64,000 nt of DNA from Paragordius varius. Lineage: Eukaryota > Animalia > Nematomorpha. Position 1 is the stretch's first letter; each line of letters starts with the position of its first letter. The notes below the pieces were generated by a model. That model had not been told where the DNA came from. It searched no databases and saw only the letters and a list, made by a program, of their open reading frames with translations. Made by a program: the position numbers and the translations under genes. Shown here one piece after another: positions 58,614 through 64,000 of the stretch. The DNA is taken from the NCBI GenBank assembly GCA_964247055.1, contig OZ176054.1, positions 10,478,001-10,542,000 on the forward strand. The letters run 5' to 3'.

Positions 58614-60631
58614 GTTTTAAATTGGGTATTTATATGTATTAAAACTATTGTTAAGTAAGATATAAATAGTTTTCCCCCTTTTTACCTTTTTATTTTATGT
58701 TAAAACTAACTTTCTACGTACTATCTAATTTATCATTTTATACTAATTGATTTCTACCTTATATTCCAAATTTATTATTTAAAATTGATTAAAATTAATT
58801 ATTATAATGTTTAAATTTTAATTATATTTTTTTATATTACCTATTAACAAGGGTAGATGGACATTTCGATTCAAATTACACATATATGTAATATAAATAA
58901 ATTAGATATTTTTTTGAACCATTTGCGCGGAGGCGTTTTTTATCTCTACAGGCTAGGCTTCTTCTTTCTCTATTAGTACACAATTTCACAACTAATAATT
59001 TTTTTTGCGCTCTAAAAAATTAATTAATTTTGCACACAAATACTACTACACTATTGAGAATATTATCACTCTGCATTCATTATCTTTACAATTTTTTATT
59101 TGTTTAGATGCCTCCTTCGTTGTTCCTTTTCAATGTCTCTTATCAAATTAGAACTAAAAAAATTTTTAGTAGTAATTTATAATATAATTTTTACACCTGA
59201 TTAAATTTTTATTTCTAAAGAATCCTGCTACATATCTAAATCATCAACTAGAATATAAATTTTGCACATCTATCAGAACTCTGGACAAGCAAGTTTTCTT
59301 ATGCATATTTTTTTCTAAAATATTTCTTAAATCATTTACATAAATCATGCTAATAAAATTACAATTTTATAGAGATGAGATTCGTGACCCATTTTTGTTA
59401 AGCCGGAGATATAATGAAATTTTGACTTGTACACCGTTTTGATTTTGAGCTCTTTTGAAAGTATAATTTAGACTTTGTAGAGCCCATTGTATATGTATAA
59501 AAATATCTAACTATTTTATGATTCCGAAAGCCATAAAATATATTTTTTAAATTCTTCATTAGGTTTTTTAGGGTTATTTCTTTTTACAACTATTACTGTG
59601 GAAAACTTGCTTAATTTTACATACATCATAATTTTCAAAAAAAAAACATTTTTTTTCGATCCCACAATCTTTCATAACTGTATTTGCTGGCATATAAAAC
59701 ATTAACCATACAAATGTTATCATATTATAAAGCATATATCATTCATATTTTATTTGATATTTAAAGTCTGTGTACTGTTACTGTTCAATATATTTTCATA
59801 AACCACACATTTGTTTTATACAAATTTATTTAGCCACATATATATATATAGTATGTGCTTGGAAAAATATTTCATTTTTTATATACATAGTTAAAAAATC
59901 GGTTTTTCAAATTTTGAAAACACAGTTTAGTTTCTCAAACATTTCGTTACATTGGTTTCTGTTAAAATTTTTTTTTATATAATATTACTGTTTAGCTAAT
60001 TTTTACATTAGATTTTTGCATAGTTTGTGCGATGATTGATGATTTCACATTAAATATTATGCGTTTTGTACACACACTAAAGAGAAGTTTTACTGCTTAC
60101 TAAAGTTTTTAAATTGGTGAATACGAAATAAAATATGAAAAAAACTTATATAATTCTCCATTCACCAATTAATACACCCTTAAAACCAATATCAATCATA
60201 TTATGTTTAATAAAGTTTTTGAGGTTTTTCCCATATTTATGATTATAATGGCATTAATGACGCTCTGTTTTTTTATGGAACTTTAACTTTAACTTATCAA
60301 GCGAAATATTAAATCATTTTACAAATTACAAACGCATAAATATTAAATTAACTTTAACTTAAATATTTTGTTTTATTAAAAGCCATATAGATTATGAGAG
60401 CATACAATAAAACGAGACTTATTATTGGCTATTTCGATGATCTTTTAATTGAGTATAAGGGGGTTTAATTTGCATGTCTGGTGCCATGTATGAAATTTTT
60501 CCTTTATTTTTGAAAATTATGATATTAGTGTTCATGAAATATGAAAATAAAATCTTTTTCAATTTCCAGTGGTGTAAGGTAAGAATCGATAAACGATTGA
60601 AATTAACCCGTTTCCCCATAATTTAACATTA

Positions 60632-60845
60632 CAGTAACATAAACAAATGTATGTTATAAATTTTTTTATGAAAAGTTAAAAAAAAGAAAAGAATAGCACA
60701 TGGTTAAAAAATTGTGTAAGTAGAAACAACAGAAAACATTTATTAAGGGTCGTACATGGTGTAATTACTAGAAAAAAATGTGTTTTTTTACTAAATTTGA
60801 AAAAAACAAGATGTATGGTAATTTTCCTATGAGTTATTTTTTATA
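60632..60845. repeat. Left terminal inverted repeat (214 bp)
   Basis: Reverse complement of 62628-62841 with no mismatch found on manual comparison, including homopolymer lengths. Confidence 0.95.
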
Positions 60846-61190
60846 CTGCCACACTAGATTGAACTAAAAAATTTATATAAATATTTAAATTTAACTTAAA
60901 CAGTGTATGGCAAACAATTGAAATACATTTTTTCGCTTGCTTAATTGATTTAACACTAATTTTTATGCCATTTCTTCTTCTAGTTACTAAATTATAAAAC
61001 AATGTTTAGTATGTTTATGTTTTAGGTTTATGTAATAATGGGAGATATAAACAATCAATAAGTAAGGGTATAAATGTTAATTTATTAATAATTATACGAG
61101 TAAATCACAAAATATCAATCATAACACGGTGCAAAACATATTTGGAACAATATTGCCGTATAAAGACGTTAAGTGAGGAAAACAAAAATA

Positions 61191-62599
61191 TCAAAAAAAA
61201 CCATGTTTATAATTGTTTTCATTATCCAATTTTTTTTTCAAAAGTGCTACGTTTAACAAAATTGATTTAGAAAATTCAAAATATTTCTTTAACGATTTTG
61301 TTTTGCGTTCCTCACACAAGCGCCTTATTCGGCAATATTGTTCTAAATTTGTTTTGCACCGTGGTGCTTTGTTATAATGATGTTTTATTTCATGGAAAAA
61401 ACATTCAATTGGATTTAATTGGGGGGAGTAGGGAGGTAAAAACACCAACCTATCCCTTAGGTTTCCAAGCACCGACGCCTTGTGAATCGGTGCGTTATCG
61501 CAGACGATAACAGACTCTTCGGGTAACATGGGCATGGTCGCTTCCAAAAAATTTTTAAACGAGTCCCCCTTAAAGGAACCCGTTTTGATGTCAAAATTTA
61601 TGACACCATCACATCCTATCATACATAGGAGTGATACATTTTGTCCTATATAATATATTTTCATTATACCTCTTTGGAACCCCTCCACAACCGGAAACTG
61701 ACCGGATGGGGCATATCCATAAATATTCTTTGGTTGAAGGGAAAATCCCGCTTCATCCAAGAAGAATATCTTTTCATCGGGTTTGAGGCGCATTCGAAGC
61801 GCATAATCATATCTTTTTTGTATAACCTCAAAAGAATTTCTCTCTCTCGGTTCCAAAATACACCTTTTACGGGTGATTTTCAATTTTTTTAAAATTTTGC
61901 GTATTGTTGGTTTCGAAACTTTGAGGGAATCCGGTAATTGTGAAATTACCTCATCAAACGTAATTTCGCAAGAGTTTTTGTATATCTTTTCAACCAGTTC
62001 AATCAAAGCTGGATTATCCAGCTTTGATTTCCTTCCTGTTTTTTGGGGTTTCGTTTCGATGCCCAAAACCATCTCTCGCCTAAATTTGTTGATGGCTGGA
62101 ATAGACATATCCAATTTATCAACAAATTCCCGAGATGGTTTTTCGTTTTCAAATGGATTCGAAAATATTTTGTATGCCTTTTTAATTTTCTCTTCTGTCC
62201 AAAAATGATAATCTTTATATTAAAGAGAAATATACTTCTTTTAACTGGAATATCATTACTAGGAGTTTCATCTGCTACCGTATTATTTAAAATACCTAAA
62301 AATTATAAAAAAAATAACCCAAGGAGTCGTTATATGAATCTTGAGGACCATCATTAGCATTTGAGCAAACACTAAAATTTGATTCTTCTGAAATTACGTT
62401 ATAATCATTATTATGATTGCTGATATCCTCACAGAAATCATAAATATTGGGTTCATGAATAGTTGGTTCTGGATCTTAACATTGATTATAATTATGTACC
62501 CTGTGCTATAACTGAATCAGGAAGAATTGCTGGTGAAGGTGGGCTTTCATTATTATCAAGATTGTCCAATACGTTAATTCCTTGTAAAATACTATCCAT
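61191..62599 (-). CDS. DDE transposase (IS630/Tc1-like, DD30E), predicted 437 aa, 5 exons: 62599-62500, 62474-62319, 62295-62236, 62212-61670, 61645-61191
   Basis: Catalytic motifs FFLDEAGF, IVCDNAPIHK and FLPPYSPQLNPIE, preceded by an HTH-like region (VSKPTIRKILKKLKITRKR). The 307-aa track ORF starts at an internal TTG, and the frame stays open upstream to 62212. Four GT-AG introns link it in frame to the ATG at 62599, 29 bp inside the TIR (MDSILQG...AQ^DPEPT...SL^GILNN...KR^NYHFWTEEKIKKA...QR^GQNVSLL). The transposase call is firm; the exon model is inferred. Confidence 0.9.
61646..61669 (-). other. Putative 24-nt (3n, stop-free) intron 4
   Basis: GTATAATGAAAATATATTATATAG; removal turns QRGIMKIYYIGQNVSLL into QRGQNVSLL, fitting the usual RG.N.S motif of IS630/DDE_3 transposases. 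Confidence 0.75.
62213..62235 (-). other. Putative 23-nt intron 3
   Basis: GTATATTTCTCTTTAATATAAAG; removes the TAA at 62222-62220 and yields KRNYHFWTEEKIKKA at the start of the DNA-binding domain. Confidence 0.8.
62296..62318 (-). other. Putative 23-nt intron 2
   Basis: GTTATTTTTTTTATAATTTTTAG; phase 1; joins two stop-free frames. Confidence 0.8.
62475..62499 (-). other. Putative 25-nt intron 1
   Basis: GTACATAATTATAATCAATGTTAAG; contains the TAA that closes the 62492-62695 track ORF; phase 1. Confidence 0.78.
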
Positions 62600-62627
62600 T
62601 TTATAAGTGGGATATTTTTGCAAAAAA

Positions 62628-62841
62628 TATAAAAAATAACTCATAGGAAAATTACCATACATCTTGTTTTTTTCAAATTTAGTAAAAAAACACATTTTTT
62701 TCTAGTAATTACACCATGTACGACCCTTAATAAATGTTTTCTGTTGTTTCTACTTACACAATTTTTTAACCATGTGCTATTCTTTTCTTTTTTTTAACTT
62801 TTCATAAAAAAATTTATAACATACATTTGTTTATGTTACTG
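62628..62841. repeat. Right terminal inverted repeat (214 bp)
   Basis: Reverse complement of 60632-60845. Confidence 0.95.
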
Positions 62842-64000
62842 TATGTTATTTAGACTTATTATATTAAAATGTGGAATGTATGGTTGAGAAAACTTATTAT
62901 TTAAATGGTTGATGATCATAAAATGAAGGCCAACTATTTCCTTTGTCATTTTTTGTAGCGCAAAAAGTTCGATATGAGACTTTTTAATTATTATAGATCA
63001 TTGCAAATAACTGACCGTTTAATTTTAATCTTTCTTATCAGTTCAATTTAAATATTTTTAATACCTTGTAAATAGTATGTATGGATGATGTTTTTTGCAA
63101 ATTTGGTATTTATATATTTACATAAACCTGAAACGAAGTTTTTTTAATCAATCATCCAAATGGTATTTACACATTTTAATGGTAGATATAGTGTTATTTG
63201 TGTATATGGTAAATGATGTAAGGTATATTGTGCTGAGTTAACATAAATTTTCGAGTTTTAAATAGTAAATTACCAATATATTTATTTTAAACAAAAATAT
63301 TTTTTTAATGAAACATTTCGATGAATATATGATACTACAATGAATTTTTTATGGGTCTGTTATATTTGTTAAGGAATGAATCCAAAACAATCCTAGCCTG
63401 GTAATAATACATATAATAATTATATAATAGCTAAAAATAAATTTTATTTTTTTTGGAAGTAATAATAGGTTGACAAAAACCATATTTTTGCATTTTTTAA
63501 GTTTTTTTAAATCATTAGTAATATATAAAGCAACTGGCAGTTTCTTTATAAAAATTTATTATGCAATCAATATTGTTTTGGGCAAAATTGCAAATAGGGG
63601 AAAGGCTGATTAAGCCATAGTGATTTTGCTTATCATATTTAATAAAATTAGGATTTTAGGGAAGTCCTTATTTTCAATTTAAATAGAATAAACTAAAAAT
63701 TGTCTCTCTCTTTTTATGTGACAAAAATGCGACATATATTTTACATATTTAGATACGAACAACTTACATACTTACATTATGTTTCATGGCAGTGCTATAA
63801 AACATGTATGTATTTAGTATATATATAATATGTAAAATAATGTGTTAAATTTTATCATTTATGCATAAATATAGTTAGTTTTTTATTTATTTATAGTTTT
63901 AGTCTGTTAAGTTAATAGTTAGTTTTTTTGAGGTGACCCTGACTTGTATTAAATATTTATTTCTCTTATAAAATGTATATACATGTTATATCATAAATAT

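Follow-up and report, generated by a model that had tools for sequence, protein, structure and literature searches.

A Tc1/mariner Transposon of the Hairworm Paragordius varius with a Transposase Gene Probably Split by Four Micro-Introns

In a 64,000-nt stretch of the genome of Paragordius varius (Nematomorpha; GenBank assembly GCA_964247055.1, contig OZ176054.1, forward-strand positions 10,478,001 to 10,542,000; here called the window, with all coordinates counted from its first letter), we identified a transposon of 2210 bp (60632-62841) with perfect 214-bp terminal inverted repeats (TIRs), CAGT tips (CAGTAAC), and TA target duplications. The minus-strand gene between its TIRs is interrupted by four AT-rich GT..AG segments of only 23 to 25 nt, and their removal joins five stop-free exons into one frame of 437 codons. 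We consider it likely that this is an autonomous, recently active Tc1/mariner element with a transposase gene carrying four micro-introns that the host spliceosome must remove. The gene would then encode a transposase of 437 amino acids (aa), made up of an Asn/Asp/Ser-rich N-terminal extension, a paired-like DNA-binding domain, and an RNase-H-like core, and the splicing machinery of the host would have to take out introns of 25, 23, 23, and 24 nt before the full-length enzyme could form. Since the closest relative, an element of the horsehair worm Gordionus, and the wider family have uninterrupted open reading frames (ORFs), the introns would be additions made in the lineage of this element after its split from intronless relatives.

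Anatomy of the element and of its gene

The left TIR (60632-60845, plus strand), found by repeat search, is 214 nt long plus the TA and has the tip CAGTAACATAAAC; its counterpart on the minus strand, found in the same way, is the right TIR (62628-62841). The target-site duplication was read directly on the left (TA at 60630-60631, in the context ...AACAT-TA-CAGTAAC) and in minus-strand reading on the right (TA at 62842-62843, in the context AACA-TA-CAGTAAC). When the TA is included, the inverted arms (60630-60845 versus 62628-62843) are 100% complementary over 216 nt. The right TIR must hold the promoter of the gene; a scan for bacterial promoters and terminators stayed at chance level and is irrelevant for a eukaryotic element.

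All parts of the gene lie on the minus strand, and all four segments, the proposed introns, are in phase 1. Exon 1 (62500-62599, 100 nt) begins with the ATG at 62599-62597 and encodes residues 1-33 together with the first base of codon 34. It is followed by segment 1 (GTACATAATTATAATCAATGTTAAG; 62475-62499, 25 nt, GTACAT..TTAAG, G+C 20%), the read-through of which meets stops. Exon 2 (62319-62474, 156 nt) encodes an acidic, Asn/Ser/Pro-rich N-terminal extension and ends at segment 2 (GTTATTTTTTTTATAATTTTTAG; 62296-62318, 23 nt, GTTATT..TTTAG, G+C 9%), which is separated by the short exon 3 (62236-62295, 60 nt) from segment 3 (GTATATTTCTCTTTAATATAAAG; 62213-62235, 23 nt, GTATAT..TAAAG). Exon 4 (61670-62212, 543 nt) encodes the paired-like helix-turn-helix region and the first catalytic Asp, D258 (FLDEAG). 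Beyond segment 4 (GTATAATGAAAATATATTATATAG; 61646-61669, 24 nt, GTATAA..ATATAG, G+C 12.5%), which is a multiple of three and stop-free, exon 5 (61191-61645, 455 nt) encodes D336 and E367 of a DD30E triad and the C-terminal helices before the TGA at 61193-61191. Together, the five exons (100/156/60/543/455 nt) make up 1314 nt, equivalent to 437 codons and a stop.

The segments differ from the exons in composition (G+C of 9-20% versus 28-37%), and the triplet AAT stands at -9 to -7 in three of them. GT..AG borders and restoration of the frame, as expected of spliceosomal (U2-type) introns, are found in all four. Because exon 3 has no in-frame ATG, it must be joined to exon 1; further, in-frame ATGs are absent from exon 2, from exon 3, and from the first part of exon 4, so that a complete DNA-binding domain needs the removal of all three upstream segments.

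A sequence-only reading of this DNA had proposed the four segments, with these coordinates and lengths, and the 437-codon frame that results from their removal, and we reproduced both. It had also remarked that an ORF caller finds just a truncated protein; the ORF list indeed shows only a 307-aa ORF (61191-62114) that begins with an internal TTG and continues through segment 4, and this conceptual read-through adds eight residues, IMKIYYIG, to the product.

The transposase, its relatives, and the fourth segment

The 307-aa ORF matches the Pfam family DDE_3 at 2.2e-21, above the cut-off, and a DDE_3 match of 3.7e-16 falls in exon 5. Single-sequence Pfam matches of exon 4 to helix-turn-helix families are weak and below the cut-off, and exons 1-2 gave no Pfam match. 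A single-sequence search of the Protein Data Bank with the transposase returned no match; a family profile built from the 307-aa ORF and 17 homologues found the Sleeping Beauty catalytic domain (SB100X, 6.7e-14) and Mos1 (1e-11), as well as the PAI subdomain of Sleeping Beauty (2e-5) and the paired domains of Pax5 and Pax6 (1e-4). In the homologue alignment (A1), D258, D336, and E367 (spliced numbering) occupy invariant columns, and further invariant residues in exon 5 are a D, an N, and the motif PPYSP.LNPIE. An AlphaFold2 (AF2) model of the 307-aa ORF, with segment 4 retained and built with the same alignment, has a mean predicted local distance difference test score (pLDDT) of 82 and the expected order of strands and helices.

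The TA duplication, the TIRs, the DDE triad in an RNase-H-like core, and the paired-like DNA-binding domain are the hallmarks of Tc1/mariner elements, and all of them are present. The second Asp and the Glu are separated by 30 residues, which departs from the DD34E of the Tc1 family proper; the shortening by four residues is common to the Gordionus relative, and most other homologues have 34. The element is a DD30E side branch of the Tc1-like/IS630-like elements, outside Tc1 proper.

Protein searches gave as best matches two proteins of Gordionus sp. m RMFG-2023 (35-38% identity), followed by metagenomic, fungal, and myxozoan Tc1-like proteins. Because no match exceeded 38% identity (proteins of 169-537 aa), even the unspliced ORF is absent from the protein collection. 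The Gordionus locus (L001, taken from OX940783.2) contains an uninterrupted, ATG-initiated ORF of 423 aa (3644-4915 of L001), and residues 34-388 of the spliced product (about 355 residues) align to this single frame (tblastn E 3e-50, 33-35% identity). The alignment is unbroken at junction 3, where PVKR/NYHFWTEEKI (the slash marks the junction) faces FPRRKYKNWNNEKI in Gordionus, and it is also unbroken at junction 4. With segment 3 spliced out, the profile of the homologues reaches position 7 instead of 39-55, a gain of about 7 bits. Segments 1 and 2 lie in the poorly conserved Asn/Asp/Ser/Pro-rich extension, in which the similarity to Gordionus is too weak to place the junctions.

At segment 4, the eight residues fall on a gap in 17 of the 17 homologues, and its removal gives QRGQNVSLL, which fits the family motif RG.N.S.L exactly at the GT..AG borders. 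Scored against a profile of 16 homologues with the query left out, the spliced 437-aa protein reaches 233.6 bits, compared with 223.9 bits when segment 4 is retained (10 bits in favor of the spliced form) and 226.1 bits for a product that starts at the internal Met and has segment 4 removed. In these alignments, segments 3 and 4 are absent from homologous coding sequence, with which the exon junctions are colinear. Homologues that align through the proposed introns as coding sequence would have spoken against the proposal; none was found at segment 4 or, given the colinear Gordionus frame, at segment 3. The comparison with DDE_3/IS630-like homologues, suggested earlier as a check, likewise came out in favor of the proposal through the DDE_3 match, the invariant triad, and the motif restored by the removal of segment 4. 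The description of the element as having adopted miniature introns is fair, as the Gordionus relative and the wider family are intronless.

Segment 4 is also where the strongest alternative applies. Segments 1 to 3 might be introns and segment 4 might be kept, always or sometimes, as an eight-residue loop (IMKIYYIG), so that the main product would have 445 aa. Its length of 24 nt, in frame and stop-free, would permit this, and in the AF2 model, with its confident core, the retained form is a disordered loop between confident strands: residues 147-156, the sole internal stretch with a pLDDT below 50, connect two of them. No homologue has residues at this place, though, and the restored motif with its 10 bits, as well as a G+C content and a length like those of the other three segments and unlike those of the exons, argue against a coding role. 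We therefore regard retention in the main product as improbable, while favoring the removal of all four segments.

Chance, genomic copies, and points against splicing

GT and AG occur often, and AT-rich DNA is full of stops; we therefore evaluated how readily such a path arises by chance. The null model comprised 3000 first-order Markov sequences, matched in composition to the 450 nt that lie upstream of exon 4, and a path was defined as any stop-free route from an ATG to exon 4 with at most three GT..AG segments of 20-30 nt. A genomic span of at least 150 nt was reached in 6% of the sequences and one of at least 350 nt in 0.2%; none of the 3000 reached 434 nt, and with the segments limited to at most 20% G+C none reached 300 nt. 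The real stop-free path extends over 389 nt from ATG 62599 and over 434 nt from the upstream ATG. The earlier statement that the continuity of the frame is unlikely to be due to chance thus stands, with a comparable path in at most 0.2% of composition-matched sequences.

Exons 1, 2, and 3 are each stop-free in the predicted frame only, with 1-11 stops in the other frames. Since the 25- and 23-nt segments shift the genomic frame and the exons are open only in the predicted one, a change of frame at exactly these places is supported. The G+C contents of the three codon positions in the predicted frame (GC1/GC2/GC3) are 0.56/0.33/0.18 in exon 1, 0.44/0.31/0.21 in exon 2, and 0.40/0.40/0.05 in exon 3, which is the gradient GC1>GC2>GC3 expected for coding DNA (with GC1 equal to GC2 in exon 3). 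GC3 is 0.17 in exons 1-3 (62599-62236) and 0.36 in exons 4-5 (62212-61191). The composition of the N-terminal extension differs from that of the conserved core and is more host-like, as if the extension were younger or evolving faster.

The element is present in seven sequencing runs of unrecorded kind, under four coded organism labels, and the reads of four of these (X1, X4, X5, and X2) were mapped on 60400-63100. Because the flanks are at single-copy depth and the TIRs at multi-copy depth, we read the four mapped runs as genomic DNA, and they behave as such. In run X1, the contig depth is about 175-183 in the flanks and about 600-790 in the exact element contigs, corresponding to about four copies that are nearly identical, along with diverged ones. 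In most of the X1 depth, segment 2 has an additional A (behind 62306), so that it is 24 nt long in other copies; this 1-nt variant would cause a frameshift if segment 2 were coding. In exon 1, the copies show an in-frame length variant of 3 nt behind 62544. These two events are the length variants among the best-supported differences listed, to which this count is limited. Among the listed coding differences, 14 of 31 are synonymous, compared with 20% expected for random changes. One diverged copy has a frameshift and a stop. Organism A further holds an internally deleted derivative without 61570-62399 (joint 61569/62400, 830 nt skipped, GAACCC inserted) and strand-switch joints at 60925/62659 and 61261/61700, which point to foldback derivatives of the family.

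Individuals seem to differ at this site as well. Sample S3 (runs X4 and X5) has no contig depth at 60491-60672 and 62857-63040, with loose ends that point to other places; the exact left junction of the insertion is present in X1, and the flanks are themselves repeats. This insertion may be absent in the S3 individual, by insertion or haplotype polymorphism.

The element was also seen in the runs under organism labels B, C, and D (X2, X6, and X7), over 60700-62605 of the window. The contigs of X2 match the window without differences along 127-311 nt, at a depth of 6-13, and both flanks are without depth. These occurrences could reflect horizontal transfer, a host sample that contains DNA of its parasite, or a relative that was relabelled.

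The copies and the null model bear on a second alternative, namely that this is a dead, decaying transposon, with small insertions as the segments and with a restored frame that is owed to the selective hunting for GT..AG pairs in AT-rich DNA. Such DNA does favor spurious paths, as the 6% of null sequences reaching 150 nt illustrate, no transcript is documented, and many family copies are broken by frameshifts, stops, or internal deletions. The path observed here is nonetheless of a length found in at most 0.2% of the nulls, and the two TIRs show 100% identity along their 216 nt. The catalytic triad is preserved, as are all invariant family residues; the spliced product aligns colinearly with an intronless relative for about 355 residues; and the copies differ in length by 1 nt within segment 2 and by 3 nt within exon 1. 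Decay is hence a very unlikely explanation of this copy, and an element with a functional, intron-bearing transposase gene remains the preferred one.

Several observations weigh against this preferred explanation. All contigs in the four mapped, DNA-like runs keep the four segments, with no joint of 23-25 nt, and in the RNA-labelled runs X9-X13, which bear the same species label (organism A), the words of the gene are almost absent. Segments 1 and 2 are without support from homology, as the aligned N-terminal stretch is of low complexity, and the evidence for them is frame, composition, and size class only. Segment 4, being 3n, stop-free, and placed in a predicted surface loop, could be translated. 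The start codon is ambiguous, too: an ATG just inside the TIR had been claimed, and ATG 62599 does lie 28 nt inside, but the frame is open above 62599 with three more in-frame ATGs, at 62644, 62662, and 62695, all within the right TIR, which may equally serve as the start. The protein could accordingly be 437 to 469 aa long, and the 437-aa form is the one that we use here.

A shorter, roughly 300-aa transposase translated from a start in exon 4, with a fortuitous frame upstream, would agree with the NCBI Gordionus model, which likewise starts at an internal Met (304 aa), and with the failure of exons 1-2 to match any family, but it is the least probable alternative by our judgment, as the first Met of exon 4 lies inside the first helix-turn-helix, so that homologue profile positions 7-54 would be lost, the Gordionus DNA is open for 423 aa and has an N-terminal extension comparable in length and composition, and exons 1-3 show frame-specific composition.

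Two other explanations were considered and rejected. Elimination of DNA, as for the internal eliminated sequences (IES) of ciliates, does not fit segments with GT..AG borders and without flanking TA repeats, and no joined DNA form occurs in the four mapped runs. A ciliate code with TAA and TAG read as Gln does not apply either, since the 437 codons contain no in-frame TAA or TAG and segment 1 would still meet a TGA.

Comparison with known systems, implications, and surroundings

The closest protein found, that of the Gordionus sp. m RMFG-2023 element (LOC135931982), shares with the P. varius transposase a low-complexity N-terminal extension, a paired-like DNA-binding domain, and a DDE core with DD30E spacing; the two are similar in length (423 versus 437 aa), and the TIRs of both elements start with TA-CAG. 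Unlike the P. varius gene, the Gordionus ORF is uninterrupted and has none of the four segments, and the TIRs around it have degraded and are shorter (118 nt, 78%). Given this divergence, the Gordionus element belongs to a different family within the same clade. The public model of LOC135931982 comprises 304 aa from an internal Met, and the open 423-aa frame adds the first DNA-binding helices. A Rabaptin-like gene on the opposite strand contains the Gordionus element.

Classical Tc1/mariner transposons are intronless or carry one ordinary intron, for example that of about 60 nt in Minos. Tc1, Sleeping Beauty, Mos1, Minos, and Tc3 resemble the element described here in their TA duplication, TIRs, bipartite paired-like domain, and DDE/D core; it differs from them in its four proposed introns of 23-25 nt, in a distance of 30 rather than 34 residues from the second Asp to the Glu, in its long TIRs (214 nt), and in an acidic N-terminal extension of about 100 residues. 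Transposase genes with host introns are well known from the P element, Minos, and Tc3. The P element of Drosophila has three introns, the third of which is removed in a tissue-limited manner. As with the P element, the cut-and-paste enzyme would here be made only after splicing by the host, and the retention of one intron could alter the protein; the P element belongs to another superfamily and has introns of ordinary size, and the regulation by splicing that is demonstrated there is conjecture here.

A precedent for tiny introns of the host type within Tc1/mariner elements comes from the Sardine, Thon, and Anchois elements of Paramecium, a ciliate with introns of about 25 nt. Predicted introns were removed from Tc1/mariner ORFs in that organism, and the DDE ORF of Anchois contains a potential intron (PMC3464196). 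Given this precedent, the principle is not new. The Paramecium elements reside in a ciliate with a reassigned code and DNA elimination, whereas the element described here uses the standard code in an animal host, and one potential intron there compares with the four proposed here. What is new is the number of introns (four), their size (23-25 nt), and the animal setting.

Among 51 animal genomes surveyed in 2026, introns shorter than 30 bp were found in myxobolid myxozoans and Dicyema only, in a survey that mentions neither nematomorphs nor transposons (PMC13644364). The introns of the myxobolids and of Dicyema japonicum have medians of 22-27 bp, GT..AG borders, and an AT-rich composition, and A residues occur shortly upstream of their AG (PMC13644364). 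The segments in P. varius are of the same size class, GT..AG-bordered, and AT-rich, with their AAT at -9 to -7 in three of the four. Those of the myxobolids and Dicyema are introns of host genes in compact genomes of other phyla, in contrast to the repeat-rich genome considered here. The hairworm genome papers compared here do not discuss introns.

If the four segments are spliced as proposed, several consequences would follow. ORF-based and standard gene finders would treat such a family as broken or truncated (a 307-aa call for this gene, and one of 304 aa in Gordionus, where 423 aa are open), and the active transposon load of such genomes would then be under-counted. Introns in transposons would be gains with an age that can be bracketed, by intronless relatives and by many dated copies, and the origin of ultra-short animal introns would thereby become directly testable in a third, repeat-rich animal lineage. 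Further, an element that depends on the splicing of micro-introns should be inert after horizontal transfer to hosts unable to remove introns of 23-25 nt, and the need for splicing would act as a built-in limit to its host range.

More tentatively, we speculate that the micro-introns were created within the element. The lineage would then make introns of about 24 nt in phase 1 from birth, rather than only by shrinking old ones, and segment 4 might serve as a splicing switch that decides whether the active enzyme or an altered or inhibitory form is made, by analogy with the P element. We regard this as possible though doubtful; if true, each transposition would copy ready-made micro-introns around the genome. 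A birth of the introns by AGGT tandem duplication was considered separately and dropped, as only segment 2 has similar 5' and 3' contexts (GGTTAT and GGTATT) and there is no general pattern.

Downstream of the coding region, the 3' untranslated part of the gene repeats the coding stretch 61301-61394 incompletely and in inverted orientation, at 61107-61187 on the minus strand. This copy was found by repeat search (63 nt, 83%), and tblastn matches it to transposase residues 373-401 on the opposite strand. The two stretches are predicted to pair in the RNA as a long hairpin that encloses the stop codon (-89.5 kcal/mol, z = -9.0). This hairpin could be a built-in trigger of double-stranded RNA or a first step to foldback forms like those present elsewhere in this genome. 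Just past it lies an AATAAA (61081-61086, minus strand), a possible polyadenylation signal, albeit a weak one in DNA this AT-rich.

Outside the element, the neighboring transposons at 52-60.6 kb contain no ORF of more than 113 aa. A 478-bp satellite occupies 5416-52135, with about 98 tandem copies that are 98% alike; it covers about 47 kb, given as four fifths of the window, and probably starts already at window position 1. The remainder of the window outside satellite and element is AT-rich transposon debris. The G+C content is flat at 0.37 in the satellite and is 0.23-0.32 in the transposon-rich stretch that holds the element.

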